From Chlorokybus atmophyticus (Eukaryota; Plantae; Mesostigma and Chlorokybus algae), in the NCBI GenBank assembly GCA_009103225.1, contig RHPI01001831.1:1-64000 (forward strand): 64,000 bases of DNA. Reading direction: 5' to 3'. Shown here in pieces: positions 1 through 48,169 of this stretch (within the stretch, counting starts at the first letter, position 1; each line of letters starts with the position of its first letter). The translations under genes were made by a program, and so were the position numbers. The notes beneath the pieces were generated by a model. The model worked only from the letters and a program-made list of their open reading frames with translations, had not been told where the DNA came from and ran no database searches.

Positions 1-10
1 AGCAGCACAC

Positions 11-2899
11 ATGCTACTGACCAGGCCTCAGCTCACTGCACACTTCCCTGTCTACAAAGACCAGGCTACCGTGCAGGAGCAGTACTACATAGCTGCTGGA
101 GTTGTGGAGTTCCACATGTTCCGCCGACAACAAGGCATCACCGTGCTGGAGCTGTTCGGAGGCATAGGCAGTGGGCTTGCGGCTGTCCTCAACACAGGAA
201 CAACAGTCACCAAGTACCTCTACTGTGACCCTAACCCTCATGCACTGGAGGCTCTGAGCCATCATTTACGACAGGTGCACCAGCGCTACCCGCAGCAGCT
301 ACCACTGTCGGCACTGCAAGGGAGCCAGAAGGCTCTGCCGCATGACATCCGCTGGATTACCAAGGATCACCTGCAGGCAGTCGGCAACATTGACCTGCTG
401 ATAGCAGGATGGGAGTGCCAAGGGCACTCCAGGGCAGGCAGAGGCCAAGGGCTCTCTGATCCTCGCTCACAGCTGTTCTGGGAGCTGATGAGAGTCATCA
501 AACTCCTGCAGACCAGTCAGGTCGCTAGGCCCTTGGGGTACATTGTCGAAAATGTGCACTCCGAGGATGACAAGCGGCATCACGTCGCCAAGGCCTATCG
601 ACAAGTATGCTCCTTGCTGGGGCATCCTCTCAAAATCAACGCCGCGCGTCATGGATCACGCGCACACCGCGTCCGCGCCAAGTGGACCAACCTGGCCATT
701 GTGGAAGACCTGTTTCTGGCAGAGTACCTATACAGCAATCGGCCACGAAATCTCGTCGTCGATGACATCCTGGACCCTGGACGCACAGCGCAACCAGTCA
801 CACGCCTTGACCACCACCACTTCTACCAGTGCAACCAGCCTTGTCAGCCGCGCCGCGCGCTACCCACACTTGTATCCTATCCAGGCTCCTACGCGTTCCG
901 CAATGCAGGCGACGGCATGGTGTTGGACTCCAACATTAGACAGCTGGAAGAACCCAATGCCCGCGAGCGCGAGCGTGCTATGGGATTCTTTCCAGGCAGC
1001 ATCACAGGCTCCACGCTGACAACCAGTCAACAATGTCAGTTGTTAGGGCGCGCCATGGATCAGAACAGCATGGTGTGGTACTTGGAAATGTGCTTTGCTC
1101 TCCAGGACCGCCATGTGTCCTTCCAGGAGCTCGAACACCTGGCTGGGGGGTGGATTGCTCGCTTTTCAGAGACCAAAGCAGCACACACCGCCCTCGAGAC
1201 CGCCCACATGGAGGAGCAGGCAGCAGTCACTGTGGAAGACATTCCAGTGGTCGCCAACGCTACCTCGTGGTCCCACGCCATTGGACCGCTGGCCACAGGC
1301 CAGACTCGAGAGCAACTCGAGGCTCTCCTCAACAGGTGGAGGAGCCAATTCAGCTTCAGTGTGAAGGAGCTGGGCATATGCTCGGCATACCAGATGGACA
1401 TTGAACTAGTGGACACCGAACCGGTGTTCAGAAGACAGTACCGCCTCTCCAAGCTAGAAGAAGACTTGGTGGAACAGAGGTGCAAGGCGCTGCTAGATGC
1501 AGGCCTGATCGAGGAGTCCACATCGGACTTTGCGGCCGCGACCGTCATGCCCCTGAAGAAAGATTCAGCAGGCAACTGGACAGACCGGCGCATGTGTGGC
1601 GACTATCGCCCCCTCAACAACAAGACCAAGCAGGACAGGTATCCAATGCCTACCGCAGAAGGCATCTTTGACGATGTAGGAGAATGCACGGTCTTTAGTA
1701 TCTTGGATATGCGCCAAGGGTACAACCAGATCGCCATCAAGGAGGAGGACAAGCACAAGACTTCCTTCTGGGGAAACCGGCAGCTGTACCAGTGGAAGGT
1801 CATGCCCTTCGGACTGAAGAACGCTCCGGCCAAGTTCCAGCGCGTCATGGACAAAGCCCTCAAGGGGTTGGACTTCGCACGCTGCTACATCGACGACATC
1901 CTCATCTTCAGTCACAGCAATGAGGAGCATCTCCAGCACATCGAAGAGGTGCTACAGAGGCTGAAGGAAGTCGGGATGACGGTGCACCCTGACAAGTGCA
2001 CCTTCTTCACCCACAAGGTACCCTACCTAGGACACATGATTGTGCCCCATGGTGTGTACGTACAGCAGGCCAAAGTGGAGGCACTGGTGGCTATCCCTGC
2101 CCCCACAGACCTCACGCGGCTGCGGGCCTTCCTCGGCCTTGCCAACTATTACCGCCGGTTTGTCAAGGACTTTGCCAAGATCGCAAGGCCTCTCAACGAA
2201 CTACTGAAGAAGGACACCGAGTTCTTGTGGAAGGAGGCACAACAGGAGGCCTTTCAGGAGCTGAAGCTCCGCCTCACCACAGCTCCCATTCTGCAACGCC
2301 CTGACTACACCAGGTCGTTCATCCTGCACACAGACTGGAGCAAGCTCGGCATGGGGGCCGTGCTCGTACAGCACGACAACAACAAGAAGGAGCGCGTAGT
2401 GTCATACGCCAGCCGCAGCAACAACAGTGCTGAGGCCAACTACAGCAGCTACGAAGGGGAGTGTCTCGCCGCAGTGTGGGCCATCTCCTTCTTCCGACCC
2501 TTCTTGTTTGGACGGCAGTTCCAACTGATCACCGACCATCAACCCTTCAAGTGGCTAATGAACAACCAGCACTTGACAGGAAAGTTAGCACGATGGGCGC
2601 TGCTGCTCCAGGAGTACGACTTCGAGGTGGAACACCGCGCAGGCCTTGCCAACCAGGATGCGGATGGCCTCAGCCGTAACCCCCACCTCAGCACCAACGA
2701 CGCCATAGGCGCCCGACATGAGTTGGGTCCTACAGCTGCACCTTCAGGTGTGGCCACCATGTTCGCTGTCGCTGCGCTACGCTCAGGATGCAGGACTCAG
2801 ATCGCTAAGGCAGCAGCAGACGGGGACATGCCCGCTCTCGAGCCCGCCATCACCACCACAGATCCTTTTATCAGAAGAAGCGATCGCTGCCGACCCTGA
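11..2899 (+). CDS. Pol polyprotein part 1: C5 cytosine DNA methyltransferase (about 110-1090) fused in frame to reverse transcriptase and RNase H
   Basis: MTase motifs: I VLELFGGIGSG, IV IAGWECQGHS (Cys codon 416-418), VI IVENV, VIII HRVRAKWTN, IX RERAMGF, X LLGRAMD. RT motifs: MCGDYRPLN, MPFGLKNAP, YIDD (1886-1897). RNase H motifs: LHTDWS, SYEGECLA, TDHQP. The ORF is open from the window edge, so the true start is upstream. Confidence 0.93.
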   Translation: MLLTRPQLTAHFPVYKDQATVQEQYYIAAGVVEFHMFRRQQGITVLELFGGIGSGLAAVLNTGTTVTKYLYCDPNPHALEALSHHLRQVHQRYPQQLPLSALQGSQKALPHDIRWITKDHLQAVGNIDLLIAGWECQGHSRAGRGQGLSDPRSQLFWELMRVIKLLQTSQVARPLGYIVENVHSEDDKRHHVAKAYRQVCSLLGHPLKINAARHGSRAHRVRAKWTNLAIVEDLFLAEYLYSNRPRNLVVDDILDPGRTAQPVTRLDHHHFYQCNQPCQPRRALPTLVSYPGSYAFRNAGDGMVLDSNIRQLEEPNARERERAMGFFPGSITGSTLTTSQQCQLLGRAMDQNSMVWYLEMCFALQDRHVSFQELEHLAGGWIARFSETKAAHTALETAHMEEQAAVTVEDIPVVANATSWSHAIGPLATGQTREQLEALLNRWRSQFSFSVKELGICSAYQMDIELVDTEPVFRRQYRLSKLEEDLVEQRCKALLDAGLIEESTSDFAAATVMPLKKDSAGNWTDRRMCGDYRPLNNKTKQDRYPMPTAEGIFDDVGECTVFSILDMRQGYNQIAIKEEDKHKTSFWGNRQLYQWKVMPFGLKNAPAKFQRVMDKALKGLDFARCYIDDILIFSHSNEEHLQHIEEVLQRLKEVGMTVHPDKCTFFTHKVPYLGHMIVPHGVYVQQAKVEALVAIPAPTDLTRLRAFLGLANYYRRFVKDFAKIARPLNELLKKDTEFLWKEAQQEAFQELKLRLTTAPILQRPDYTRSFILHTDWSKLGMGAVLVQHDNNKKERVVSYASRSNNSAEANYSSYEGECLAAVWAISFFRPFLFGRQFQLITDHQPFKWLMNNQHLTGKLARWALLLQEYDFEVEHRAGLANQDADGLSRNPHLSTNDAIGARHELGPTAAPSGVATMFAVAALRSGCRTQIAKAAADGDMPALEPAITTTDPFIRRSDRCRP

Positions 2900-4405
2900 G
2901 GTGGATGATGAGGAGCTGGCACCCACCGACACACGACAAGACATCTGGCTGGACGAGCCATCCCTCGCACTGCTTCAGACTGGACAACTTCCAGCAGGCA
3001 TGAGCGCACGCGAGAAGGACCGTGTCCGGCAACGCACTCAGCGTTACCGCTGGGCCAACGACCGGCTGTATCGACGGATACAAGATGCAGATCAGGAGGT
3101 CCCCACACCAGCTGCACGTGAAGGCATCATCTCCTCCCTTCACACCGAGCTCGGGCACTTCGGTGTCAAGCGCACGGTCAGCCTGGTTAGGACCCAGTAC
3201 TGGTGGTATGGGGTGCACAGACAGGTGCGGGAGTTCGTCAGCAACTGTCAGCAGTGTGACATGGTTCGCGCCAGCCTCAACACGCGCAACGCCACCTTGC
3301 ATCCCCTTCCCATTTCCGGGTTGTTCTACCGCTGGGGACTGGACATCCTCGGAGACCTAGCGCCCTCAGCGCGAGGCAACCGCTACATCCTCGTCATGAT
3401 CGAGCACTTCTCTCCAAGTGGGTGGAGCTGGTGCCCCTGCCCGACAAGAGCAGTGAGGGAGTAGCCCAGGCTTTCCTCTCCCATATACTCGGACGCTTCG
3501 GCAGCTGCGCTGAAGTCATCACCGACCAGGGTACGGAGTTCAGAGGAGCCTTCGACAAGCTTATCGAAAGATGCTTCATCGACCACCGTCGCACCTCACG
3601 CGACCACCCGCAGGCCGACGGCCTCGCCGAGCGTACCGTGCAGACTATCAAGAAGGCACTGCGCAAGTACGTCCTCGCCTACGAGAAGAATACCTGGGAT
3701 GATCACATCCCATGGGTAGCAATGGGCTACCGGCTGTCCAAGCAGACAGCCCTGCGAGAGTACAGCCCATACTATCTACTGTTCCGAAGGCAGCCATTGC
3801 TCCCTTTCCGCGCACAGCAGGGGGGTGACAGAGTGGTGGACAATCTCGACAATCCCGACGAGATGTTGTATGATCTGACAGTGCGCAGTGCGCTGTTCGA
3901 ATACACAGTCCCCATGGCCTTCAACAACCTGCGCATCGCGCAGCACCGCGACACGCTGCGTTACGAGCGTGTGCGCAGTGGCTTCTACAAGGAGTGGGAG
4001 CGCCGCTTCGAGTCAGGAGACTTCGTCTACCGTATGGCGTCTACACGTGACACCCTCGATACCTCCGTCGGGCGTGCTGTCTACAAGGTATTGAAGGTGC
4101 ACCCCACAGGGGTACTGGACCTGCTGGGACAACGAGGCGAGCGCATGAAGGACAACATGGTCAACTGCGCGCCCTGTCATCTCCCCTACATTGCTGGCTT
4201 CACCAAGATCCAGCACCCGCGTCCGCTGCGCAGCACCCGATGCGAGAAGTGTGGCAGCGCCGACGACGACCCATTGATGATGTTATGCGACGGCTGTAAT
4301 CAAGGCATGCACTGCTACTGCCTTGACCCTCCACTGGACGCAGTACCCTTGTGGGAGTACTGGTGCGATGACTGCCGCATCAACGGTCCCCCACACAGTC
4401 GGTAG
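2870..4405 (+). CDS. Pol polyprotein part 2: integrase (HHCC, DDE core) with C-terminal PHD finger, split by two frameshifts
   Basis: HTELGH..CQQC zinc site; WGLDILG, ITDQGTEF and GLAERT catalytic motifs with D(34)E spacing. PHD is CEKC..CDGC..H..C..WCDDC at 4241-4378. One extra T in the T4 run at 2866-2869 and an extra TC at 3409-3414 shift the frame; removing both joins all three ORFs. Confidence 0.9.
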
Positions 4406-4443
4406 GAACTGAGTTCTGGAGCAGAGGGCTACCCCAGAATCTC

Positions 4444-4451
4444 AGGGGGGG
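4444..4451 (+). other. Polypurine tract
   Basis: AGGGGGGG just after the pol stop and immediately before repeat block A. The same arrangement occurs in the second copy (30845-30852, minus strand). Confidence 0.8.
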
Positions 4452-4690
4452 TGGCTTGTTGACTGTGTGCACTACGACACAGTCTGTACACAAAGGTGGC
4501 GAGCGGCATCGGCTCGTCCACTGCACTGAACACCGCGTAGGCTCATCTTCAAGCCTATGCCCACGATTGGGGGGTTGTCTTTTGCTTACATGACTCCAAT
4601 GCACTGCACGGCACTAGCATGCGTGCAGCACTAGCACTCCTCCGCAGCCTGTCCGAGACAAGGTTGCCCTCGACCATAACAGGCACGACA
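4452..4690 (+). repeat. Terminal repeat block A, first copy (ends ...CACGACA)
   Basis: Near-identical direct copy at 5343-5614. A diverged, collinear homologue lies at 30607-30844 (minus). Confidence 0.9.
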
Positions 4691-4692
4691 GC

Positions 4693-5342
4693 TGTCATGC
4701 CATCTACCCTCGCATGCCAGTCCTTCTCGAGCATGCCTACACCCAGCCCCACGCCCGGGCTACCAGCATGAAGACCGCGCGAGCCCCAGCCTACTGCTAG
4801 CTACTGTACCTCTCATGTAGCATGTAGCTAGGGCTACTTTATAGACCTGTCTGTAGGGACCGCGCGTAGCTGATCAGTTGTAAGTCTGTTAACAACACAT
4901 GTGCTATATCGAGTCTTAGGGGATTTCCGAAATAGCATACGGCCTCGATGTGACCGTTGGCCTAGTGCCTGCGTGGCACTGCACAGTCCTAGTTTGACAT
5001 GTATAAGTAGGAAGTCACGTCACCAGACCGGCTGGTGACACTGTAAGTGAGTACTGTGAGTACTAGGAGTATTAAGCAGTAAAGACTCTGTTTCTAAAGA
5101 GCTTGTGAAGCGACTTGAATTGGAAGCACGCTGCCCCAGTTGCCAAGAATTCCCTTACTGCGTGAGACACGGTGCATGCTCTTGTGCGCTGTGCCTGTCA
5201 TTGCTGTGAGCTGGGCGATGGTGTGTTGTCTCAGTAGTCAGGGTGTTGTATCCACGTGTTGCACACTCATTCACCTCACTTAACAGTGTATCGTTCTATC
5301 CACTCATGCAAAGAATTGTGTCCACAGCACTACCTATCGTAG
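4693..5342 (+). repeat. Terminal repeat block B (starts TGTCATGCC)
   Basis: Aligns over its length with 35086-34496 (minus). Shared blocks include GCACC/GACCGCGCGTAGCTG, TATATCGAGT, GTATAAGTAG, GCTGGTGACACTGT, CTCATTCACCTCACTTAACAGTGTA and CTCATGCAAAGAA. Confidence 0.85.
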
Positions 5343-5614
5343 TGGCTTGTTGACTGTGTGCACTACGACACAGTCTGACTTGTTGACTGTGTGCACTACG
5401 ACACAGTTTGTACACAAAGGTGGCGAGCGGCATCGGCTCGTCCACTGCACTGAACACCGCGTGGGCTCATCTTCAAGCCTATGCCCACGATTGGGGGGTT
5501 GTCTTTTGCTTACATGCCTCCAATGCACTGCACGGCACTAGCATGCGTGCAGCACTAGCACTCCTCCGCAGCCTGTCCGAGACAAGGTTGCCATCGACCA
5601 TAACAGGCACGACA
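5343..5614 (+). repeat. Terminal repeat block A, second copy, with an internal 33-bp tandem duplication
   Basis: Matches 4452-4690. CTTGTTGACTGTGTGCACTACGACACAGT occurs at 5346 and 5379. Identity stops at GACAG (5615), just before the point where block B would begin. Confidence 0.9.
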
Positions 5615-5734
5615 GTGCACATGCATGGGGTACCGTTGCTGGCATGCGACCCCCCCCCCCACACACGTAAACGCTGGCACAAGGAGTAAGGCATTCGCAT
5701 GTGCCCTTGTGCTAGCGTTTGTGTGCGTGCATGT

Positions 5735-6585
5735 GCACACAAACGCTGGCCCACACAACAACGAAACACACACACACATACACTCGCACAGTCCAATCAC
5801 ATTGCCATCAGCATTGCACACACATACACACACAAATGCTGACACATAGCGCACGCAGACAAGCAAGCACGCGCATGTGCACACAAACGCTGTCACACAC
5901 AACAACCAAACACATACATACACACGCACGATCCAATCACATTGCCATCAGCATTGCACACACACACACTCACACAAACGCTGACACATAGCACATGCGG
6001 ACAAGCAAGCACGCGCATGTGCACACAAACGCTGTCACACACAACAACCAAACACATACATACACACGCACGATCCAATCACATTGCCATCAGCATTGCA
6101 CACACATACACACACAAATGCTGACACATAGCGCACGCAGACAAGCAAGCACGCGCATGTGCACACAAACGCTGTCACACACAACAACCAAACACATACA
6201 TACACACGCACGATCCAATCACATTGCCATCAGCATTGCACACACATACACACACAAATGCTGACACATAGCGCACGCAGACAAGCAAGCACGCGCATGT
6301 GCACACAAACGCTGTCCCACACAACAACCACACACACACATACACTCGCACAGTCCAATCACATTGCCATCAGCATTGCACACACATACACACACAAATG
6401 CTGACACATAGCGCACGCAGACAAGCAAGCACGCGCATGTGCACACAAACGCTGTCACACACAACAACCAAACACATACATACACACGCACGATCCAATC
6501 ACATTGCCATCAGCATTGCATACACACACACACACACTCACACAAACGCTGACACATAGCACATGCGGACATGCAAGCACGCGCC
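5735..6585. repeat. CA-rich minisatellite, about 140-bp unit, about 6 copies
   Basis: TCCAATCACATTGCCATCAGCATTGCA recurs at about 5791, 5931, 6073, 6213, 6353 and 6493. Confidence 0.9.
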
Positions 6586-6659
6586 AACATGCATAGCACA
6601 TGATACCAACGAAATCGACATGCACCAGCACATCATTTGCTTAATTACCGTCTGTGTGC

Positions 6660-7468
6660 GTGTGTGCGCAGCTCGAGGCGAAGCGGCTGGTTTTTAACAC
6701 AATGCCGGTCAGCGAGAATGAGAGCAAATGGAAGTTGAAGGTCTCCCTTAATTGGGTTGTCCGCTTCATGGCACGCAAAGATCTTACCGTGCGCGCACCA
6801 AAGTTGGACAAAAGTTGCCGCGAGATCTGGAGCAGAAGGGCATCGTATGTTCATCACTCTCATGCGAGAGCGGCACAAATACGCGTCCAGTCAGGAACAT
6901 GGACGAAGTACCGGTGATGGTTGACATGCCCGCCACTCGTACGGTCAACCAGCAAGAAAGCCGCACTGTCACCATGAAAACGACAGGTCAGTCATGCATG
7001 CACATGCAGTCAAGCAAAAGTTGCAAGCTTAATTTAGGTAAACATGTATGGCGTGGCCTCACATACATTGAACAGGTGCTGAAAATAAGAACATTACGGT
7101 TGTGTTAGCATGTGCCCTAGACGGCACTAAACTGCCGCCAGTCGTCATTTTTGAGCGCAAAAGTTTACCTTTTAATTTAGTCATGCCGGATGGGGTGGTG
7201 GTGTGGGCGAATGATGCGGGGTGGATAGATGAACAACACACACGCGAGTGGGTGGAGGTGGTGATGCGCAAGCGCCCAAAGCCGGTGTTTGGCACAAGAG
7301 CATTGCTTGCTTGGGATGCCTTTTCGGCACACGGATGTGACTCCGTGAAAGCAGCAACGCAGGCCGCCGGCATCGATCAAGCTATCATTCCGGGTGGGTG
7401 CACGCCTATCCTTCACCCTAGGGGGGACTGTATTTTGGGGGGGGGACTGTATTGGGGTAAATACGGTA
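6660..7468 (+). mobile_element. pogo-family (DDE_1) transposon remnant with one terminal inverted repeat
   Basis: Transposase fragments WVVRFMAR, DEVPV..DMP, TG/AENKNITVVLACALDGTKLPP, LLAWDAFSAH and IPGGCT, with a GT-AG intron at 6987-7075. The coding sequence is truncated at about 7418. The end GGGTAAATACGG+TA (7466-7468) is the reverse complement of a TA-CCGTATTT pogo-type terminus. Confidence 0.8.
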
Positions 7469-8231
7469 GGCCCCACCCTTTTTGTAAACGAAAGATTAGG
7501 GTAAACGTGCCTAATTTCGGAACATGCCCTAATTTCGGAAATGCTAGTTTTTGAGCTGCTGACGGCGCATCTCGATCCCGATTAACGTGAAACTTACAGG
7601 CAATCAACTAAGTATCAATCGAGTTCTGATGAGCCAAAATTCAGTTGAAACGGCCAAGTATGGCGGCCAATTCAAATTGTCAAAGGGGGGGTTTGTAAGA
7701 CCCTTTGGCCGTGTGCATGAACCCTAAACTTTGTCTGGTCATAAATTGGTCAATTCTTTATCAATTCAAATGAAACCTAGTGCAATAGAGAGCTCTTACT
7801 GTGCTCTATTTATCTACCAAGTTTCATTGCATTTGACGCGGTTATGCAAAAGTTACAATGTTGGGGGTGTGGGGGTGTTGCGCAGCGCATGGAGTGAGGT
7901 GGGGCAGATGTAGTATGTAGCCTAAAGCTTTGAAAACGGGGTTGGCGCCTTGTATCAACGTGCTTAGGTGTTTGAAATGGGTATATAGTGTTCAGAATGC
8001 AAGTTGGGAGCTGTTAGCGCTCTGGTTGGGTGTGAGTGCAGGTGAGTGCAGTCCGCACCAAGTTGCATGTGTGAGTGCTAGGACAGGCCATTGGCAAGTG
8101 CGGGTGAGTGGCAAGCTTGTGGCAGTCAAGGAGGTGTTGATCAGATTGTGGGTAGCTCAAGCAAGTGTACAACTCATACATGAGGCTACAACTACTTCTA
8201 TCTATGCCAAGCACAAAGGGCACTAGGGTGG

Positions 8232-8566
8232 GTGATGTGTGCTTTCGCATCGCATCTGCATCCTTGTGGCTTGCTTCCACTCAGACCACCCCTGTCTCAC
8301 ATGTGCTTGTGTGTGTGGGAGCAGGGCAGCAAGCGTGTGAGAGCCAAGACCCCAAAAAGACCTGGAGGCAGAGGGCAATACATGCGTCACCAAGATCACC
8401 TGCATGACATAAGCCGTGTGGTCAGTGCTGTCAAGTCTGGCTGCATGGCAGTTAGCACGGCACTGACGGAGCTGGACATCCCATACTCCACCCTGTGGGA
8501 CTACTGCACACACCCCGAGAAGTTAGACAACTACAAGTAACCCACATAGTTAGTGTAGAGTGCAAA

Positions 8567-8615
<49 letters not shown>

Positions 8616-10537
8616 AGAGAAAACTGACTTGGCTATGTGCATGTAGGGGGGCAGGTGCACCAACACTGTTAACTTCTGAAGAGGAGGCTGATCTAGCTGA
8701 ATTTGTGAATGCACGCAATCAAGTGGGACGAGCAATGACATGGACTGAAATCGTGCTGGAAGTGGGCAAACAATTGACTAAGGATCCTCGTGCAAACAAC
8801 TGGAAGCATGGCGTACCTACCAAGAAGTGGTTTGATGCATTTGCAGCAAGGAACAAGCTATCCTCGCGCAAGGCAGAGCCACTGGACCGCTCCAGGAGGG
8901 TGGGACTCAGCCGGCCTGTTGTTGAACATTACTTCAACCTGTTGGAGCAAGTGGTGACTGAGTTGGGAGTTGAGCCCGCAAGGATCGTCTCAGCAGATGA
9001 GATTGGGGTTGAACCGGACACTGCAATGCAAAACCAAATAGTGATAGTGGCAAGGTGAGTGTTACCTTGCCACTATCACTCTTTGGTTTTGCATTGCAGT
9101 GTCCGGTTCAACCCCAATCTCATCTGCTGGAGTGTTATTGTTGCAACTACCAATGCATGCCCCTGTCAGTGCATGTGGGTCAACGTCATGTGGTTGTAGC
9201 AGCAAGTACAAAAGCACGCGCAGAGTGTGCTAATGCGTGTATGTGTCGGCAGTGGATCGAAATGGGCACAAGCTGCAACCACTGGAAGCCGCGAACACAT
9301 TACCTTGATGTGTGCCGTGACTGGTGCTGGGTATGCCTTTCCCCCCCTGGTCATTCTGAAGGGCAAAAGGCTCAATGACGACTACAGAGACTTCGGGAAG
9401 AAGGTGCCAGATGCCCGGTTCAAGGCTCAAGACAACGCGTGGATGACAACGGAAATCTTTCAAGAGTGGGTGAAGATGTTGGTGGACCACATCCCTGGCG
9501 GCGTGTCGCTTGACAAACCTGCACTGCTTGTCATAGTTGGGCATGTTAGCCGCTACAACCCAGTCATGATTGAGTACGCCAAGGAGAAGGGTCTGCACAT
9601 TCTGATACTTCCTCCTCACACCACACACAGGCTGCAAGTTCTTGATGTGGCATGCTTTCACTTCTTCAAAGAGAGCTACCGGAAGCAATACCAACAGAGG
9701 CAGAGGACACGCTTCAACTACCACCCACACAGAAAGGAGTTTTTGAGCATGCTTGTGGAGCCATTCTTTGCGGGGCTGTCATCAACCAACATCATCAGCG
9801 GCTTTCGTGCTTGTGGCCTATGGCCAATTAACAAGCATGCAGTGGACAAGTACCTACCCCCTGTTCTGCCAGCTGGCCACTTGAGAGCCCTGCTGCAAGC
9901 CATTGATGTTGATGATGCCATAGCCCAGGCTGACGCCAACCCAGAGGTGGAGGTGGAAGACTGTGCCTTGCATACAGAAGCACCTAAGAAAAGGAGGGGG
10001 GTTACCACTGCACACCTCCTCATCAGCGACGAGCTGCACGCAATGCTAGTGGCTCAAGACGAAGAGAAGGAGCAGAAGAGACAAGCAAAGCTACGCAGGC
10101 AAGTAGAACAAGCAAACAAGAAGGAGGCAGCAGCAATGGCAGCAGCTCAGAAGGCAACAGCAAGAGCAGCCAAGAAGGCTGCTAGTGAGAGGAAGAAGAT
10201 GTTAGAACAAGCAGAGAAGGATGAAAGACGTGCTGCAAGGGAGGACAAGCAAGCAGAGGCAGCAAGGCAGAGGGCGGAAGCAGAGGAGGCAACTCGCCTT
10301 GAGAAGGAGCAGAGGGACAAGACCAGGGATGAGGCGCTGGCTATCCTTTGCCGCTACGAATGGGATCCTGTGTTGTGTTGCAATCAGCAGGGAGACCCAT
10401 TCGGTGACGTAGCAGAGGACTACGCCAACACACGCTTCAGGCCCAACCCTGAAGCGCGAGCAGCAGGCGCACGCTGGCGAGCAAAGCGGCGAGCTGCAAC
10501 ACAGCAACCAGCGCCAGTCATGCATGCTGCAGCTTAG
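8232..10537 (+). CDS. Intron-containing transposase (psq-type HTH, CENP-B/Tc5 HTH, DDE_1); second catalytic Asp replaced by Val
   Basis: Exons are about 8232-8536, 8647-9054 and 9253-10537, joined in frame by GT-AG introns. Motifs: LDIPYSTLWD, GAPTLLTSEEE, WFDAFAAR, SADEIG, LLVIVGH (GTT at 9536 where DGH is expected) and PPHTTHRLQVLDV. The start codon is uncertain. Confidence 0.85.
8571..8610. repeat. (GT)n microsatellite in transposase intron 1
   Basis: Directly visible. Confidence 0.95.
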
Positions 10538-11383
10538 GTAGGCCTGTAGCAGGGCAGATGCAACCTGTAAATAGACATGACTTGTACAAAGACACACACA
10601 GCAACAACAACCTCCACAACAACAACCACAACTCCAACAAGAAAGCATCCAGATCACCTTGGCTTGCCTTGCAAGATGGATTGCCTTGCACTCCGCTTTG
10701 CATGCCGCCGCTCAACCATCAACTCCTAGGCCTTGGCACCACACTCTGTGCGCTCACACCCCTGTGCACGCCTCCTGCACAGCGCCGCCGGCGCCAACCC
10801 TAACTTGCAGCACAACTACCTGCTTGGCGCCAACATGGCGGCGTAGCTTAGCGCCAAAAAATGGCTGCACTAACTGGCTGCAAGGCAAGCCTGTGATAGG
10901 CTGGCGCAGCACTGGGCCTATTACAGGCTTGATAGGCTGCCAAGACAGCAAGGCTAACCCCGCCAACCCCTCACACCCTTCACAAACGATAAGTGCTGCT
11001 AGCGCGCAGACAAGGCATTCTGACCTTCCGAAATTAGGGGCAACTCACTTTTGAGGAGAGCCTCAAAATACCCCTACTTTGGCGTGCTGTATCTGGCGCG
11101 ATACTGCGCCAAAAAATGCAAAAAAATAACCATTGTGTAGCCCTAAGCCTCAGCTACAATTCCTATACATACATCACCGCCAAAAAACGTACTTATTAGC
11201 CGCCACAACCTTAAAACCTCAAAAACCTCCGAAATTAGGCACTCTTACCCTACGTGGGTTGCAAGTCATGTCAAATGGCCATCCGGCGCTGACCTGAGAG
11301 GCCTTTTCCTTGTATCGAGCGGCCGCCTCTCGCCACGACGCACGTGTGCACCCTGACAGCGGCTGACAGCGACGGCACCAACC

Positions 11384-12028
11384 ATGCCCGCAACCATGTG
11401 GCTGAGTCAGTCAGCTTGCTCCATGGCGGGGCGCAGGCCAGGCGGCGGTCGTGGCGACCTGGTGAAGGCGAGCAAGCAGCTGTCCTACCTGCTGAGGCAC
11501 CACCCGGAGAGCGCAGGCCTGCGGCTGGACGCGCAGGGGTGGGTGCCTGTGGCGGAGGTGCTGGCGGCGGTGCCGAACCTGACCGCCGCCCAGCTGGAGG
11601 CCGTGGTGGCCGCGGAGGGCCTGGACAAGAAGCGCTTTACTGTCGCCGTAGGCGACGACGGCGTCGCTCGCATCCGAGCCAGCCAGGGCCACTCCGCCGC
11701 GGTGCCCGTGGATCTCGCCCTTGTCGCCGCCTCGCCGGCCGACGTACCTGCCCACCTCTACCACGGCACTCCCGCCGTCAACCTCCCATCCATCATGGCC
11801 CAGGGCCTCCGCCCCCGCTCTCGCCACCACGTCCACCTTTCCAGGGACGTCCCCACAGCCCTTGCCGTCGGCCGGCGCCACGTGGGCGGCGGCGGCGCCC
11901 ACCCGGTCGTCCTGCAGGTGGCTGCCGCCTGCGCAACATCTTCAGGCCTCGATTTCTACCTTAGCGAAAATGGCGTTTGGCTGGCTGATCATGTGCCTCC
12001 CTCCTACTTGAGTGTTCATCCTGCTTGA
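11384..12028 (+). CDS. kptA: RNA 2'-phosphotransferase (KptA/Tpt1), bacterial-type, single exon
   Basis: Motifs SKQLSYLLRHHP, LDAQGWV, DKKRF, IRASQGHS, LYHGT, RHHVHLS, VGRRH..PVVL and FYLSENGVWL. The start may be Met 11384 or Met 11423. Confidence 0.92.
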   Translation: MPATMWLSQSACSMAGRRPGGGRGDLVKASKQLSYLLRHHPESAGLRLDAQGWVPVAEVLAAVPNLTAAQLEAVVAAEGLDKKRFTVAVGDDGVARIRASQGHSAAVPVDLALVAASPADVPAHLYHGTPAVNLPSIMAQGLRPRSRHHVHLSRDVPTALAVGRRHVGGGGAHPVVLQVAAACATSSGLDFYLSENGVWLADHVPPSYLSVHPA

Positions 12029-13436
12029 AACTCGCACCATACTAAAGCAAACAACCATTGTGTGGTTACTCTTTTGGCTCCAAGCCGGCTTCAAGCTGCA
12101 AAACAGTGCGTCTGTTGCAGGCAAGTGAAAGTATTGCGTCCTTAGCATGTCGATGTAGCAGTGTGTTGTTAGTTTCTTCAGTCTGACTTGCCTGTGCCAT
12201 TTGCATGGTACACGTACTTGTTGTGCTCTGTTCGATCTCGCACGCACGTGCGCACTTGCTTGTGAGCTGTGTGCGTGCATGCACGCATCCATTTGTTTGT
12301 GCATGTGCGAGTCTTACATGTACATGTAGCACGCGCATGTGCCATGTGTACTTGTGAAAGACAACGGAGCTAGCGCCCGTGCGCGAGTGTCTGTGTGTTT
12401 GTGTGCTGAGACTTACCTGCATTTTCATCGTTTTCTAAACTCAAAGTAGTGTCTTGCAGGCGGTTGTTAGTGTCTACAAGGCAAGCCTGTTATGAAGGTC
12501 TCGGCCTAGTTGTGTGGTGCCTAGTGATTGATGGCATTCACATCGTTGTGCTTGCAAGGAAGTTTGCTACGCCATGTCCCAGTCGGTTCGGCTACGTTGA
12601 TGGGCCACTCAGGTTGTTGCCAGACATGACCCGTGAGGCAGTCACCAGCTGCTGGAGGAGGAACAACATGTTTCCTGCCTGAAGCAGCAATACAACCTGT
12701 TACGGTGACTTGACGCTGGTGCAGTAATGTAGTAGCATGACGCTAGTAGTACACATAGCTCGGTCTGCTGCATTGTCGTGTGCGCATGCAAGTTATGTAC
12801 ACTCAGTTGACGAGTCTCTTGAGCTTTCCTTGTGTACGGTGTTGTGGAACAGGTCCATTTCAGCACCACACATTGTGATTGGAAGCCGGCAGCGTTTTTT
12901 GTGCAACTTGCATTTCTAAGTACTCTGGGGTGAAGTGAAGGTCGTAGCTTGCCAATGTACTAAACATGCGATACAATACTTATATGCATAAGATAATATG
13001 GAAACTGCAGGTGTCCTAGCTAGCCAACCAACCAACAAGCACGTCATAACAGAATAAGCAACAACATGAGGCAAACACACCATATTTCAGGTCGGGGGGG
13101 CATAGCGCAGCATGTGCCTCCAGTCATGCGCATGTGTGTTATGTACATGGGTGTTCAACACGTGCATGGAAGTTGACAGCACGTCCTACACATAACCCAA
13201 CCTGCTACTTTGAGACAGACTACACAATCACATCACAGCACACGCTCACCATTAAAATCACACAACAAGTAACGCACCACCTGCAACTGAACTATCCAAG
13301 CGCAAGTGTGCTCAACATGGTAAGCACATGTACATGCAGAGGTTCGACCACGACCACTACTATGTACACACATACAAACTTGTATGAGTGCGATATCGCG
13401 CACACAGCTGAACACTATCGTGGCACACCGCACCAG

Positions 13437-15390
13437 TCACAGCAGCCTGCTCCAGTGCTTCTCTAGCTCTTGCAATACGGAGGTGGCCAGTTCGCCAGCT
13501 TCCGGAGAGATGTTCAAGGCGCCAGTCAGATACGCACCACTGAAAGCCTTCCAATAAGGTGACGCAGGCCTTGGATAGTATGGATCGTTGATCGTGATGC
13601 TTTGCACAATGACATGGACGTCGTCATTGTGCGCCCGCATCTGATTGAAGTCGATACAACCATACCAAGGCTCTTGACTCATGGGGTTGTTGGGGTCACT
13701 GCACAAAACAAACTCGATGTCGCGCCCGTCCCAACCAACCTCAAAATTGATGAAGGACAGGAGCTGACCCATGCCAGCAGCAATCCTACTTGCGGGTAAG
13801 CCCAATCCTTCGATGCGATCGGTCGTAAGCGGATAATTCTCCAAATTGAAAAACCTGCTACGGGCTTGACTCGTTTCCTTGCCTAAGTAAAGGCGTGCCA
13901 AGAATGGTGGCATAGGTTTCTCCTTCTCAGCCTCAGGAAAATACTTCTCCATGATGGCGTTGCCGACTTCGAGTGGCACCGGCCGCATGCGCTGCATCAC
14001 ATACATTGCAACGGGTGGCAAGCCCAAGGCCATGCCTGGAGGGTTGCCAAGAGCATTCGCAAAGTCCTGAAACGTGTCGTAGTAGCCAAGTGGTTGGGGC
14101 ACTTGAAATATTAAATGCTCTTGCTTGCTGCATGCGGCAGCAAGCAACTCAAGATCTTTGTATTCCTGCAACAGCTTCGTGGCATCTGCTTGATGCCTAA
14201 CTTGCTTGACAACAACGGCGCTGTAGTCCTTGTTGCAGAAAACAGTAGCAAAGCTACCGGCACCCAAGCGCTCGAACCGACTGATCAGAGCAGAACTTGG
14301 AACCTAAATTCGTACAAAGGTAACAGGTGATTAGAAACCAAGCAAGTCATCACATTCATTACTCCGGCATGCATTTCCTTTGACAGATGTCACACTTGAA
14401 GAGCAGCATGGAAGATATCTAACAACGCATCAACCTAACAGCTTGTTCAACTCTTCATGCTGTGTGCATGACAGTACTTGGAATTGGGACGACTCAATAG
14501 CGAAGCATGCATCAGTATTGGGTTTCACACACCTCCGCTTGTGCAGTGACAGAACCGGCAGGCTCCCCTTCGACACCCTTCACAGCCTGCTTGAAAACAC
14601 TACAGTCATCTCTCAAACCCTTGACTATCATAGCCATGACGTTAGGACGAACAAACATAGTTGCAGTGCACCAGTACTGCCTCCCACACCTCAGCTTTTG
14701 CAGTGATGGTAGCAGGCTCAGCTTGGACAACTTGCACCTCCCCTTTACCCTCCTCCAACTCTTCATCCTGATGTGAGTGCATGACAGCATCGCAAACTTG
14801 GACTGAGGACAACCCGACAGAAAAGCATTGCACGAGATTTGGCTTTCGTACACCTCAGCTTGCGCAGTGAAGGGCGAACCAGCAGGCTCGCCTTCAACCT
14901 GCTTGACAACAATACTGTCATCTCCCAAACGCTTGGCTATATTAGGACGATTAAGTACTGCCTCTCACACCTCAGCTTGTACAGTGATGGTATCAGGCTC
15001 ATCTTGGACATCTTGCGCCTCCCCTTTGCCCTCCTCAGCCTGCTCGCCAACAACAGTATCTCCCAAGCGCTCCACTATGCTGACGAACGCTGCCTCGCCC
15101 ACCAGCGTTGTTGTCAACGTTAGGTTGTCCATGAGATCATGCAGAGCAGGATATGCTTGGCTTTGGTCTCCCAGTTGCACCTGAAAACTGTTGCGCAACT
15201 TGTCCAACAGTTCTGTCGCAGGCATGTCCAACAGACTTGCCTGCGACAGAACTGTTGGAGGTGAAAGTTTGTCAGAAAGCATGTCTGACAGAGCGGCCAA
15301 AAGCGGCCACAGCCAAGCGGGCATGCCTGGCAACAACTTCGTTGCCATGGCCCGTCAGCCGTTCAAGGCTGGGTTGCATGGTGTAGGTCC
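13437..15390 (-). CDS. Kinase-like protein of fungal DUF3669 type, paralogue 1 (main exon 14302-13437; upstream exon(s) partly degenerate)
   Basis: Gly-loop LGAGSFATVF, VVKQV, DGRDIEFVL, CIDFNQ and NDPYYPRP. An acceptor lies at 14302. The upstream segment MQPSLERLTGHGNEVV is shared with paralogue 2 but frameshifted here. The family name is recalled from motifs and was not searched. Confidence 0.7.
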
Positions 15391-16199
15391 AGCCAAACAG
15401 TGCAAACGGAAGGCTGCAAGGACCTACAAGCAAAGGTCAGCAACGTTAGTCATTAACCCGCAATAACCTAGGCAGTGCCCCTGTTTTACTCACAACGCGT
15501 GTACTTGATAGCCAATACTCTACATATTGCTCTGAATGCACAGCAATCTTCATCCATCAAACACACACACGCATACGCAACACACACACGCATGCATGCA
15601 TGCATGCATGCATGCATGCATGTACAACCATTATATAAACCGTCACATGCAGACGCACTGTGTTGAATGCAAGGCATGTGGAAACACGCACGAGCAAGCA
15701 GCCGCAACAGAACTCACCCCGCTCCACAACATGCAAGGCATGTGGAAACCCGCACGAGCAGCCGCAGCGCTCACAATCCTCATCCACCACAAGCTTGCTG
15801 TGTTCGCTACAGAAACTACAAAGTCACACAGCACCTGACCAGCAGATTAGCGTTAGTAGTTTGAGATCAATGAACGGAAGGCAGGTGGGCGGTAGAATCG
15901 CTAGTGCCCGCCTGCCTCGCCTACAGTAGGTTTGAGGGGTTGGAGAAAGGCGAGGCAGGCAGGTGGCAGCGAGTAGCCACCGCCTGCCTCGCCCTTGTCA
16001 AATTAGACCTGCTGATTGTGTCTCAGTTTGTGAGTACCGTAAAGCTGTGAGTTTACTGTCCCATACATCCATCATGCGTGACCGGGTGGCCGTCACGCAT
16101 CGCATTCGGCGATGTTGGTAACCCGTTCTATAACAACTGTAGCTAACGTCGTTGTCATAAAAATGTCACACACAACAAAAACATGACAAATTGTAGGCG

Positions 16200-19100
16200 T
16201 CGTCGCGATGATGAACGATCACATTGATGCGGTTGCCTTACATACATATACATGTATGCATATCTGCCCAGATTATTGTACTATGTCTTACATCAGTTGT
16301 ACTTGTTCATGTACATTATAGTGTTAGAAATCGTGCTTGTTTTTATGTACAAAGGTACTATGAATTTTGTGTCTTATATATATTTATAATTATCTATATA
16401 ACTAATATATTAAAATATGTATTACAATATTTCAATAGAATACTATGGATATTTATAATTAAGCTGCAATCGTTTCCTTCAGCTTTGTCAAGCTTGGACC
16501 TGATCTTTATGTTTAAACTAATCATCGGATATTATGACATAAAAGCCAAAACTACTATATAACTGCATGTAAGACAATTGTAACACAAACATTGATTTAA
16601 CGATAAACAATATTTTTAATAAAACAAGAGTGAAATGTGCAAGTGTATGTAAGAAAGCTTGAGTGTCAGCTGGTGCATTAGCCTAATGTCATTATCATGC
16701 ATATGCTTGGTGTATTGCCTATATATATGTGGTGTTCCGTGTTTACTGCCGCATGCGGCGCAAGGCATGCCGCCATGTACTGGGTGTGCGTGTTCGCCAA
16801 TCATTCATGCTGTATGATCATAGCCATATGTGTAGGTTTAAAACATGATTATATATAAATGCATTGGCCCAATCATATAATATTCTGCTTTTAAGTGTAT
16901 GGGCCCCAGCATATAATATCCATGATAGATGTTGTATATCAAGCGGTGTGACCACTACCTCTTATGGTCATAGTTCATGTGCATCTCTTTTGTGTCAGCT
17001 TACATGCACGCCAAGAATATTTGTGAAATATGTAGACTGAAATAATTTGTTTCTTTTGAGGCGCTAAATTATTTATGATATGTATATATGATACCAATAA
17101 TGGCAATCAACGTCATGTATGCGACAATTGCATGAACTTACATTGATTGCCATCATTTGTGTGGCCACATCTAGCGTGCGTCTCCTTCGTGTCGGCTTAC
17201 TAAGCCGACATGACATGCATGCTATAAGTAAATGAACTCAACTGCAAATTGTGCTGACTACCATTACTTGTTTGATTTGAGGCATTAAATACTAATAATG
17301 GCAATCAACGTCGTGCATCCGACCTCCGCATACGCTTGTGTTGATATTCAACGACCAATGTACTGCTCGTAATATGACTTTAAATATTGCAAATAATGTC
17401 ACATTGATTGTAACGATCACAATTCAATGGCAATATGATGTCGCGATGGCCAATTAATTGTACGATATTGTGCCATGCAAGCCTGCACTGATGACTCTCA
17501 CCCATAGAAGTTCAGATGTATATGTTATATCACCCATCCGTATCAAAGAGACATCGAGCTGCATATACATATTGTTTAATTATTTGATAATGTGCCATTG
17601 CAAGGTTCAAGAATTTATGTGGATCATCCCACCGTGGCGCACGTGAGGCTCACGTGTGCACGTGTATGTGTGCACATGCAAAGCGCTTGTCCTTTACTCC
17701 TCAATTTGCCCGTCAATCCTTTCAACGTACCTGCAGTTGAAGGCGCAACTACAAAACCAATATGGGTACTGTGGCCTCTCCTCCCTGCAGGTTGTGCTTC
17801 ACGGAAGGGGTACCCCTTCTTGCTGCCTACCTCGACCTGCTTGAGGGTCTAGTCTTATCTAGTGTCTTGCATACTATACTTGTAGTGTTATAGCTAGTCC
17901 AAGTGTTAACACTTACAACTGGCGTTGTATTTGATAGCTCTACCTTAGCCCCCGCATGATTGAGGGTGTTTTGCGTGCTGTTGGCTGTGCGCTAAATGCT
18001 GCACACATTCGTTTCCACATGATAGAGTGTGCTTCGCGCAGCTCTTGTGTCTATTATGGGTACTATTGCTACTTGCATAACAGATTCTGCATGAACCTTC
18101 AGCAAGCGTCTCTTACAAGCGCACGCGATATGACAGCGAATATGGCACAACTTGCCTTTGGTGTGACTCGAACCCAGCTTTCTCGAATCACAACCTCTTC
18201 TTCCTATTTACCTTATGAGTTAAACAACAGAAATTGAAAAAGCTTGCTCTTGGTATATCACTAGAACAATCGGATTACAACCCCCCCTCCCCCCCCTTCC
18301 TTAGATACGATAACATTTANNNNNNNNNNNNNNNNNNNNNNNNNNNNCCCCCCCCCCCCCCCCCCCCCCCCCCCCGCTTTCATCGTAAAGGGTGAAAGTG
18401 ACTACAAAATTGAATCCAAATTTGGATAATCTAACTTAGCGGTCATTGTTACGTGTGTAGAAAATAATTTTCATGCATGAGTAGGTTTGTCACATGATGC
18501 CTAATCAAATGGGTAGACAATTCTTTGTCCGATAAGGACAGACTTTATTCAATAACCAGACATCACCGCCTCAAACTCATCTGAACTTATATTTGAAACC
18601 TCTCAAACATTCAGCTTGTCAACTGAAAGTCAACTTACTAGCTGACCAACAAAGTCTTCAACATTGATTAGACAGCTGATGTTATCCTGCATACTCAAAT
18701 ATTTTTACAATAGTCTAGGTCTTAGCCATTTCAGTGACTTGAAGAAAAGTGAAGGTTGAATGTCAGACAAAAATAGCCTGCTTACATTCACAACATCTTT
18801 GATAGACAGAGTTCACTGCATATGGTTGATGCTGCTATCTGATTGTCATGCATTGGAGAGGTTACCGGTTTTATTCAACAACCAAACAAGCCATCTGCCA
18901 ACAAGATTATTAGTAGATCTCGTCAACCATGTACGTGCTGATACATCTAATTGCCGTCGCGGCGCAGCCACTCGTTTGCATCTTCATCCACCACGTCTTC
19001 CTCATCGCTCGAGGCGATGTTAATTCTTTGCGTGCCTCCCTAAGGGACACATGTATCAACCCCTTGGGCAATAACGCGTGCGAGTGATGTTTATTTTCCT

Positions 19101-23229: not shown

Positions 23230-23620
23230 ATGCCGCCCTACTCCCATGGACGACAACGACTCGCCTACGCATCCACGCAAACGCCCACGGACCAGACAGT
23301 CCAGGACATACACATTCGCGTGGCAGGACAAAACTGCAGCCATCAACGCAAGAGCGCAAGCCCGTGGTGCTGCTCGCGCTTCCGTTCCTCAACCAACGAT
23401 CGCTGGCCCATCGTCCGGCACAACACCTCTGAGCGTCGAAACCGACATTGACCAGGCGAGGGCGCTGGCCCAACAAACCAGGGGGGTGATCGCCCCGCTG
23501 CTACCCGCCTTGGTGGAAGATCTGCCTGACGATCAACGAGATTCAGGAAGAGGCTACCTTACACCTTAAGGGTGTACACAACGGGATGGAGCAGGCCTAG
23601 TTGGAGAACAGCAAGTTCGC
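23230..23620 (+). repeat. Relic of the gag-pol intervening region of the DNMT/PHD Gypsy family
   Basis: Homologous to 31620-31300 (minus). Both translate to F.W.D..AAINARA..PTIAGPSS..ARALA.QT..VIAPLLPAL.EDLPDD..GRGYLTP. Confidence 0.75.
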
Positions 23621-26499: not shown

Positions 26500-26991
26500 T
26501 GTTGGAGTTTAGGACCTGGTTCTGCCGTCTTTAGACTTCAGGCAGCTTAATCTGGCTAGGTAGTTAGCAGTTTTGTACTTAGCAATATATTTGAGTATAG
26601 GACATATCTCTGCCGCCTCTAGACTCTAGTCAGCTTAATCTGGCTGGATACTCATTGGTTTGTACTTAGCAGACTCTAGACCTGTCGAGTTTCCTAACAG
26701 TCCTGGCAGTTTCGACCGTTTAGGGCTTTGTTAGTTTTTGACCAAACCTGACCTGTATGACTACTTGGTAGTTGAAAAGGTTATTTGGGTATAAGGGGAC
26801 GCCCATACACGTTTGTAATGATTCACTTTCACTTGTGCTTGAGTCTGGTGGTGGCAAGGCTAGAATCCGGCGTGGCCTGGACGGGGTTTGGTCTGGCGTG
26901 GTCTGACTGGTCATTTTGCACAGACTGTCTGAGGGTGTTGTGTTGTGTATTCACGCCTAGGTAGCTCACATCTCAACAGGTTATGGGCCCA
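26500..26991 (+). mobile_element. Second, unrelated Copia LTR (26500-26978) plus PBS
   Basis: TGTTGG...CTCAACA followed by GGTTATGGGCCCA (26979-26991). An internal about 90-bp duplication lies near 26521 and 26610. It interrupts the first Copia integrase. Confidence 0.75.
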
Positions 26992-27165
26992 CATACGCTG
27001 GGTATTAAGCTGGTATAGGCATTTTGGCGGAACATTTACTTTGATCGTAGCTTTCTAAGTCTGCGCCATTCTGGTGATACTGTGGAGGTCTGGGCGCCTG
27101 AAACTGCTTTTTCTTTTTTGGCCTGATTTGGGCTTGTTTTTGAGCGGGGGGGGTGTTATGACGAC

Positions 27166-30606: not shown

Positions 30607-30889
30607 TGTAAGGTCGAGGGGAGTCGAGGGTCACACTGTCTCGGGCCGCTGCAGGGAAAATCATGCTTGCTAGCCCTGCTGCTGCAACATGTTACAACAT
30701 GTAGCAAAGTAAAAGATAACACAGCTTGTATGGCGAGGAGTGCTTGGTGGAGCTGCTCTGCTGTTGCTGAGTCACACGGACATGTGGAGGCGGTGTCCTC
30801 CTTAGAGTACATGCTGTGCTGTAGGACACACAGTCAACAAGCCACCCCCCCTGAGCTTCTGGGGAGGTTCCAGCTCCAGAGCTCAGCTG

Positions 30890-31310
30890 TTAACGCATGT
30901 GAGGAGGACCATTGGTGCAGTCGTCGCACCAGTACTCCTCCATGGGTATTGCGTACAATGGGGGCTCCAGACAGTAGCAATGCAGGCCCTTGTTGCAGCC
31001 ATCGCCGAGCATCATGAGTGCGTCGTCGCCGGCACTGCCGCACCGTTCACAGCGTGTGCTGCGGGCGGGGCGAGGGTGCTGGATGCGCGAAGTAAGGGGT
31101 GGACATGGCGCGCAGTTCACCATGTTGTCTTTCAACCTCTCGCCATTCTGACCAAGGAGGTCCAGCACTCCTATGGGGTACACCTTGAGTACCTTGTAGA
31201 CAGTGCGGCCCACGGAGGTGTCGAGCGTGTCCTTGGTAGCCGCGATAGGCAAAGTCTTCTGCTTAAAACCGCCGTTGGCGCTCTCTGTAGAAGCCCCGAT
31301 TGAACCTGCT
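30890..31310 (-). pseudogene. Integrase C-terminus plus PHD finger remnant
   Basis: DTLDTSVGRTVYKVLKV..DNMVNCAPC..RSTRCERCGSAGDD..HCYCLEPPL..YWCDDC, homologous to 3960-4405. One PHD Cys is now Gly, and an upstream stop is present. Confidence 0.9.
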
Positions 31311-48082: not shown

Positions 48083-48169
48083 CATGAAGGTGCGCAACCT
48101 GGCCTTGCCATCAACACGTAATGCGCTTGTTCAAACCAATCTGGCTGCCCTTCTTGGGAGCAAGGGGGG

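Follow-up and report, generated by a model that had tools for sequence, protein, structure and literature searches.

Permuted repeats in decayed Ty3/Gypsy elements of Chlorokybus atmophyticus and their streptophyte relatives, and a possible route of integration through end-joined DNA

A stretch of 64,000 nucleotides (nt) from the alga Chlorokybus atmophyticus (NCBI GenBank assembly GCA_009103225.1, contig RHPI01001831.1, positions 1 to 64,000 of the forward strand), hereafter the window, carries what we read as two decayed copies of a Ty3/Gypsy retrotransposon. They would belong to a streptophyte clade with a DNMT3-like methylase and a PHD-finger integrase, one copy being long and the other an internally deleted short form. 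Two repeated blocks, A and B, lie in the order B1-internal-PPT-A1-GC-B2-A2, where PPT is the polypurine tract and GC a dinucleotide. We propose, with a probability of roughly 0.6 for this reading as a whole, that the permuted layout arises when integrase opens end-joined DNA at a palindrome inside the long terminal repeat (LTR).

Repeat layout in the window and among relatives

All coordinates are positions within the window. Copy 1 is truncated by the window start, so that its 5′ end and the left flank, with one half of any target-site duplication (TSD), fall outside. Its remaining part ends in the blocks PPT-A-GC-B-A, which the first-pass annotation had reported at 4444-5614 and which are found there:

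1-4405, plus strand: pol remnant (Pfam; tblastn against an intact relative), with a stop codon at 4403-4405
~341-580, plus: C5-DNA methylase (PF00145), detected core (Pfam)
~1580-2041, plus: reverse transcriptase (RVT_1; Pfam)
~2228-2617, plus: RNase H (Pfam)
~3108-3272, plus: H2C2 finger of the integrase (Pfam), after which the DDE core follows
~4241-4375, plus: PHD finger (Pfam)
4445-4451, plus: PPT, seven G, directly adjoining A1 (from sequence)
4452-4690, plus: A1, 239 nt, ending in GGCACGACA; predicted U3 start of the reverse-transcription LTR
4691-4692, plus: GC dinucleotide between A1 and B2
4687-4696: palindrome GACA-GC-TGTC, perfect over 10 bp (GACAGCTGTC), at the A|B joint; putative internal att site
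4693-5342, plus: B2, 650 nt, starting with TGTCATGCC (by analogy with copy 2 and relatives)
5002-5007, plus: TATA-like box of B2
5037-5048, plus: predicted transcript start and self-primer GACACTGTAAGT (by analogy with copy 2 and relatives)
5343-5614, plus: A2, the terminal A, whose GACA is the 3′ end of the element
5615-5618, plus: right flank GTGC, candidate half of a 4-bp TSD, such duplications being shown only in relatives

The pol remnant matches residues 886-2299 of an intact relative of 2300 amino acids (aa) at 45-49% identity (tblastn). It changes frame twice, once between 2707 and 2940 and once near 3413, and the window integrase retains the conserved D and E residues. A1 is 97.9% identical to 5376-5615 (A2) over 240 nt (E 1e-115). 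A2 has in addition a 33-nt tandem duplication of the A start (5346-5378 and 5379-5411). With its flanks, the palindrome at the A|B joint extends to an imperfect inverted repeat (18/20).

A second copy had been placed at 30607-35086. The copy and its limits stand, and its strand is minus, the element running from 35086 to 30607:

34495-35086, minus strand: B1, with the 5′ terminus TGTCCTGCC at 35086 and TATA-like boxes
34777-34763, minus: predicted self-primer GGTGACACTGTGAGT
34473-34494, minus: the 10 nt TGGCTTGTTG, equal to the first 10 nt of A, then the predicted primer-binding site (PBS) ACTCATAGTGTC
32680-33753, minus: gag open reading frame (ORF) with a CCHC zinc knuckle (Pfam)
30890-31330, minus: remnant of the integrase C-terminus and PHD finger
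30851-30845, minus: PPT, seven G
30844-30607, minus: single A, ending in CCTTACA
23324-23595, plus: a third fragment of the family, 272 bp, 81% identical to the internal sequence of copy 2 at 31574-31305

Read in its own sense, copy 2 has the order B-gag-(pol deleted)-PPT-A, with a single A; everything from the protease through the integrase core is deleted. It is flanked by tatt (left) and tttt (right), a match at three of four TSD positions. The PPT adjoins A in both window copies, as had been claimed. Between the two copies A, B and the integrase tail show only 67-76% identity (E 1e-9 to 1e-85), and the copies are therefore separate old insertions.

Protein relatives with 40-54% identity were found in Marchantia polymorpha, Calypogeia fissa, Closterium and metagenomes, and their flanking DNA was compared. 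A full HMMER search returned no pol relative of the window above 61% identity, and the nearest full-length polyprotein (L090) lies on a contig without element ends. The relatives informative about the layout are:

L006, Marchantia, gap-free: B1-internal-A1-GC-B2-A2; A1/A2 100% and B1/B2 99% identical; TSD GGTT
L007, Marchantia, gap-free: B1-internal-A1-GC-B2-A2; A1/A2 100% and B1/B2 96% identical; TSD CCCT
L008, Calypogeia: B1-internal-A-GC-B-A-GC-B-A; TSD AGGT
L001, Marchantia: joint and ends as in L006 and L007; assembly gap within B2; no TSD found
L004, Closterium: B1...PPT-A (~25 nt)-GC-B2, reaching the contig end; TSD not seen

A further Closterium locus (L009) was left out as too gapped. 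Two long-read metagenome contigs (L002, L003) end in PPT-A-GC-B-A|flank, and in L001-L004 and L006-L008 A meets B in the exact 10-mer GACAGCTGTC. When JGI metagenome contigs were scanned using an integrase-PHD alignment, 80 more loci (L010-L089) were obtained, mostly of one moss-like family. About 20 unique insertions of this family end in PPT|A|GC|B|A|flank (long form), and about 17 of the 37 unique ends are PPT|A|flank (short form), as in copy 2. Judged from sequence, B1-internal-PPT-A1-GC-B2-A2 is thus the family plan across streptophytes (liverworts, moss-like genomes and other green algae). The first-pass annotation had called the layout family architecture rather than a one-off deletion, and this is borne out by the recurrence of PPT-A-GC-B-A and the palindrome in L001, L006, L007, L008, L004, L002, L003 and the ~20 moss-like insertions. 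Copies with canonical terminal LTRs, which would have spoken against its reading, were not encountered among the relatives: an A upstream of B1 occurs in 0 of ~15 complete elements.

Several relatives show further features. The extra B-A unit of L008, at 15454-16429, lies inside the perfect AGGT TSD and fits either unequal crossing-over or a three-LTR intermediate. A long-read metagenome contig (L005; ENA ctg158368_0x_c, 1-16317) is a head-to-tail array of whole units B-internal-PPT-A-GC. The units are ~8.4 kb and >99% identical, with the A|B palindrome mutated to GACAGCTGAC; this might reflect tandem copies in the genome, an extrachromosomal concatemer or an artifact of assembly, and the '_c' in the name may flag a circular contig. 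In the moss-like family (L010-L089; Ga0116226-31, Ga0209611 and others) the palindrome and neighbouring sites are often GACAGTTGTC or GACAACTGTC. These C-to-T versions, with many CG-to-TG changes, fit methylated-cytosine decay of old copies. The window itself has a second GACAGCTGTC at 50348-50357, within a 12-bp palindrome (CGACAGCTGTCG) and preceded by a TG-rich stretch. It may mark where A meets B in a further decayed element of this kind, or be due to chance.

Integrated ends, priming sites and a candidate route of integration

The integrated ends are TGTC...GACA, an imperfect inverted repeat with the TG...CA termini of Ty3/Gypsy elements. In 10 complete relatives a perfect 4-bp TSD immediately flanks the element, on one side next to the TGTC that opens B1 and on the other next to the GACA that closes the last A. 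Five are long forms (L006 GGTT, L007 CCCT, L008 AGGT, L070 TTTA, L081 TTGT) and five short forms (L035 CCAA, L054 TGTT, L061 ACTA, L074 TCCC, L086 ATGG). L031, L072 and copy 2, the only testable window copy, match at three of four positions. The layout begins with B, carries TSDs and has no A before B1, and the ends were therefore made by a staggered cut of the DDE type. The polyproteins of intact relatives (2300 aa and 2188 aa) contain an rve integrase, and gag-CCHC and aspartic protease are also present in relatives.

Split direct repeats are a hallmark of the DIRS group, and a true DIRS/PAT/Ngaro-type element, moved by a tyrosine recombinase, has therefore to be considered. It is very improbable here. 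A domain search gave no Phage_integrase match in the window ORFs or in the polyproteins of intact relatives. What is present instead is a DDE integrase of the rve type that retains the conserved D and E residues; the 4-bp TSDs also argue against such an element, since DIRS elements lack TSDs. Insertion by a DDE integrase, as the first-pass annotation had it, thus agrees with the 10 perfect TSDs and with the enzymes found. We give equally little weight to an ordinary LTR element with a local rearrangement (a tandem LTR and deletions) or to mis-assembly of the A-B-A stretch. The 33-nt tandem duplication in A2 of copy 1 and the assembly gap in B2 of L001 would suit such explanations. Layout, palindrome and ends recur, however, in independent assemblies, including the gap-free chromosome-scale Marchantia and Calypogeia assemblies, and dozens of insertions have different flanks with matching TSDs. 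Because the TSDs differ, a single rearranged ancestor is excluded.

The priming sites point to a different register. A G-run PPT adjoins the first base of A1 in both window copies and in all relatives, and the PPT|A1 joint is invariant in 17/17 unique moss-family insertions. At the other end, the 11-16 nt just after B1 are the reverse complement of a B sequence ~30 nt downstream of the TATA box. This complementarity occurs in six lineages (Marchantia, Calypogeia, L005, the moss family, Closterium and window copy 2), the transcript start being predicted from TATA spacing only. In Marchantia ACTCGAAGAACT pairs with AGTTCTTCGAGT. In window copy 2 ACTCATAGTGTC pairs with GACACTGTGAGT over 15 predicted pairs, two of them G-U. 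Minimum-energy RNA folds pair the two ends (z-score -4.0 for L006 and -2.4 for copy 2). By analogy, the pairing would be the signature of self-priming of the Tf1/Sushi type. The sequence TGGCTTGTTGACT after B1 of copy 2 was considered as a tRNA-type PBS and dropped in favor of the self-primer complementarity, which lies 10 nt further on and is present in every related lineage; the tRNA set was not searched.

With the PPT at A1 and a self-primer site after B1, the LTR made by reverse transcription should be A-GC-B. The B2|A2 joint would then be the end of U5 joined to the start of U3, as in a 2-LTR circle. The position of these sites supports an A-GC-B LTR that is out of register with the integrated ends, the TGTC...GACA termini lying inside the LTR at the palindrome. 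The first-pass annotation had proposed a replication LTR of A plus B with the integration site inside it, and the proposal is backed at the level of position, the PPT adjoining A1 and the Tf1-like self-primer site adjoining B1.

The 10-nt TGGCTTGTTG occurs at 34485-34494 (minus), 4452-4461 (plus) and 30835-30844 (minus), where it ends the predicted U5 and begins A, the U3 start. As it stands at both predicted ends of the cDNA, the linear cDNA is predicted to have a 10-nt terminal direct repeat. At the B2|A2 joint of copy 1 it is present once. A 13-nt identity between the sequence after B1 and the start of A had been considered and shrinks to this 10-nt repeat, which was not seen in the Marchantia or moss families and so is not general.

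A model that joins the two registers can be outlined as follows. Transcription would start in B1, ~30 nt after the TATA box, and the RNA would end inside B2, with A1-GC and the first part of B2 acting as U3. Priming of minus-strand DNA would be of the Tf1 kind, by the first 11-16 nt of the RNA folding back onto the site that immediately follows B1. Minus-strand DNA would begin at the end of B, and plus-strand DNA, primed by the PPT, at the first base of A. Given priming at these sites, ordinary reverse transcription would yield a linear DNA with two A-GC-B LTRs, whose ends are not the integrase ends. The linear ends would be joined, U5 to U3, to form the B|A joint of a 2-LTR circle or a head-to-tail concatemer; we regard the circle step as plausible. 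Integrase would cut 3′ of both CA in GACA-GC-TGTC inside one LTR, with one nucleotide (G) beyond each CA, and the resulting B...A-GC-B-A molecule would be inserted with a 4-bp stagger. Only the long form keeps a downstream B, with the R region and the transcript end. It would therefore be the only replication-competent product, which would explain why so wasteful-looking a layout is conserved. Short B-internal-A forms such as copy 2 would be dead ends, produced by opening of a 1-LTR circle, by cutting of both palindromes in linear DNA or by later recombination between A1 and A2.

Variation at the B2|A2 joint bears on this model. Among moss-family copies the joint varies by -5+1, -2, 0, +1 and +2 nt, and the two extra nucleotides of the +2 variant are the first two PBS bases. 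B2|A2 alone among the joints varies in this way, the A1|GC|B2 joint having one indel in 17 copies. The B2|A2 variants are scattered over the tree of family copies, as they should be if every cycle forms the joint afresh. There is also a precedent for the proposed cut: retroviral integrases cleave the palindromic 2-LTR junction (PMC1905944, PMC1180852, PMC4372172), acting on it much as a restriction enzyme would (PMC1905944, PMC1180852).

The permutation could also be templated, without a ligated circle. Reverse transcriptase would then build B...A-GC-B-A by template switches, as proposed for DIRS/PAT, the internal A-GC-B serving as a bridge that defines or regenerates the termini, and integrase would act on ready linear ends. 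The repeat layout is formally the A1-internal-B1-A2-B2 of DIRS-type elements, and L006 does not differ from L007 at the B2|A2 joint, nor one unit of L008 from the other. We nevertheless consider templating unlikely. With a PPT before A1 and a self-primer after B1, the DNA is expected to begin with A and finish with B rather than to have its ends at TGTC and GACA, no purine tract was found upstream of B, and the B2|A2 variants, including the PBS-derived bases, look untemplated.

Two origins are considered for the short forms. Copy 2 and the others may be long forms that lost GC-B2-A through unequal recombination between A1 and A2, like solo LTRs. A1 and A2 are direct repeats of 115-240 bp lying 0.3-0.9 kb apart; short forms retain perfect 4-bp TSDs and complete A ends, as this origin predicts, and copy 2 is both old and internally deleted. 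The high frequency of short forms (~17/37 unique ends) argues the other way, and direct insertion of a short form predicts an identical sequence. As both origins predict the same sequence, sequence alone cannot tell them apart. We give recombination an even chance, about equal to that of opening a 1-LTR circle.

Several points weigh against integration from end-joined DNA. We infer the circles, the RNA ends and the cutting of the palindrome by integrase from sequence patterns. Cleavage of a palindrome is documented only for retroviral integrases, and at the U5|U3 junction, not inside U3. Short forms are nearly as frequent as long forms (~17 versus ~20), and the model has only side reactions or later recombination to account for this. 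The commonest B2|A2 variant (-2, a loss of AT within ATAT) could reflect recurrent slippage rather than fresh end-joining, and the joint shared by L006 and L007 counts in the same direction. TSDs are absent from two complete relatives, L001 and L014. Finally, the 5′ end of copy 1 is unseen, neither a gag search nor exact-protein look-ups of two window ORFs having returned a same-family copy that would reveal it.

A wider form of the model would have the whole streptophyte-wide clade integrate obligatorily from cDNA whose ends have been joined, as a 2-LTR circle or as a concatemer. The att palindrome cut by integrase would lie inside U3, the provirus would be circularly permuted relative to the canonical one, and replication would be open only to circle-derived copies. 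Here we are slightly more doubtful than confident. If true, it would be the first natural system with palindrome cleavage by integrase as the main route of integration and not as a retroviral side reaction.

Other features of the window

The neighborhood of the two copies includes other repeats, element remnants and genes:

5677-6658: about seven copies of a 140-bp satellite, CA/ACAC-rich, starting 60 nt past the 3′ end of copy 1
9227-10537, plus: ORF of 436 aa with a DDE_1 (pogo/Tigger-type) transposase domain
11384-12028, plus: intact ORF of 214 aa, Tpt1/KptA RNA 2′-phosphotransferase (Pfam E 8e-44)
13437-14276: an older copy related to the repeat-bounded sequence at 42443-48477, on the opposite strand
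24007-29775: another, older LTR element, with terminal repeats 78-80% identical, a copia-type gag (24555-25151) and RNase H/integrase remnants (28352-29224)
42443-48477: direct repeats of 308 bp, 99.4% identical and 5.7 kb apart, with a G-run before the 3′ repeat, enclosing a DUF3669 zinc-finger ORF (47192-48082)

The best relatives of the Tpt1/KptA ORF are actinobacterial (Actinoplanes, Couchioplanes; 56-61% identity), and the ORF may represent a gene of bacterial type that reached this eukaryotic region, rich in transposable elements, by horizontal transfer.

Comparison with known systems

The first-pass annotation held that the layout was undescribed for an element with a DDE integrase. This was too strong. 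The Gypsy element KnitGypsy-Dnmt3 of Klebsormidium nitens has a DNMT3-type methylase within its pol, and one sentence in the legend of Fig. 4c gives it DIRS-type repeats and Gypsy-type domains (de Mendoza et al. 2018, PMC5890265). The accessible parts of that paper, text and supplement, concern one species and yielded no TSDs, palindrome, PPT/PBS analysis or mechanism for this element; no mention of it beyond that paper was found in the literature searched. The window element and its relatives likewise have a C5-DNMT domain (PF00145) upstream of the reverse transcriptase in a Gypsy polyprotein. The DIRS-like arrangement of repeats in the window elements agrees too, the comparison being with the published description, as far as accessible, and not with published copies. 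We thus place the window element with KnitGypsy-Dnmt3, as a kind already briefly described; it is set beside it by description, retrievable proteins being at most 61% identical. The literature searched yielded nothing on the 4-bp TSDs, the internal palindrome, the register of self-primer and PPT, the heterogeneity of the joint or the occurrence in liverworts, zygnematophytes and moss-like genomes.

The window elements resemble other Ty3/Gypsy elements (Metaviridae) in domain order. RVT_1, RT_RNaseH(_2) and Integrase_H2C2 follow one another in the window, in keeping with the order protease, reverse transcriptase, RNase H and DDE integrase, and a PPT before the 3′ repeat and a primer-binding site after the 5′ repeat are also shared. 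They differ in lacking two identical LTRs at the outer ends, the integrated form being B-internal-A-GC-B-A. Elements of the DIRS order (PAT-like, Ngaro, TOC1) have split direct repeats, a tyrosine recombinase and no TSD (PMC8969392). Only the order terminal repeat 1-internal-repeat 2-repeat 1-repeat 2 is common to both. The window clade has a DDE integrase, 4-bp TSDs, TG...CA ends, a PPT and a self-primer site, whereas DIRS elements have a tyrosine recombinase and a DIRS-type reverse transcriptase. Self-priming, in which the transcript start pairs next to U5, is known from Tf1/Sushi and has also been predicted for the plant element Tcn1 (PMC6317226). The window clade shares with these the domain order protease, reverse transcriptase, RNase H and integrase, and would share the self-priming, which is predicted from complementarity and TATA spacing. 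Tf1-type elements, however, have two canonical LTRs and a chromodomain integrase, whereas permuted LTRs, a PHD finger and a DNMT domain distinguish the window clade.

The closest parallel to the proposed intermediate is the 2-LTR circle of retroviruses (foamy virus, HIV-1). It contains a CA...TG palindrome that an integrase tetramer can cut into integration-competent ends, and its U5|U3 end-joint carries small indels. The retroviral palindrome coincides with the U5|U3 joint, and its cutting is at most a side route. The window clade has its palindrome within U3, and its U5|U3 joint comes to lie in the interior of the integrated element. For LTR retrotransposons and retroviruses the textbook substrate of integration is a linear DNA with two LTR tips, and circles are seen as dead ends. 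The landmarks of reverse transcription (PPT and primer site) and those of integration (TG...CA and TSD) appear to be out of register by a fixed amount in the window clade, which is difficult to account for unless the ends are first joined and integrase then cuts internally. Confirmation would make the clade a natural model, genetically tractable in Marchantia and Klebsormidium, of how integrase cleaves palindromic junctions, and split direct repeats would then not be diagnostic of tyrosine-recombinase elements. The layout would also explain why LTR-finding software, which expects two identical terminal LTRs, would miss or misclassify these DNMT-bearing elements in bryophyte and algal genomes.

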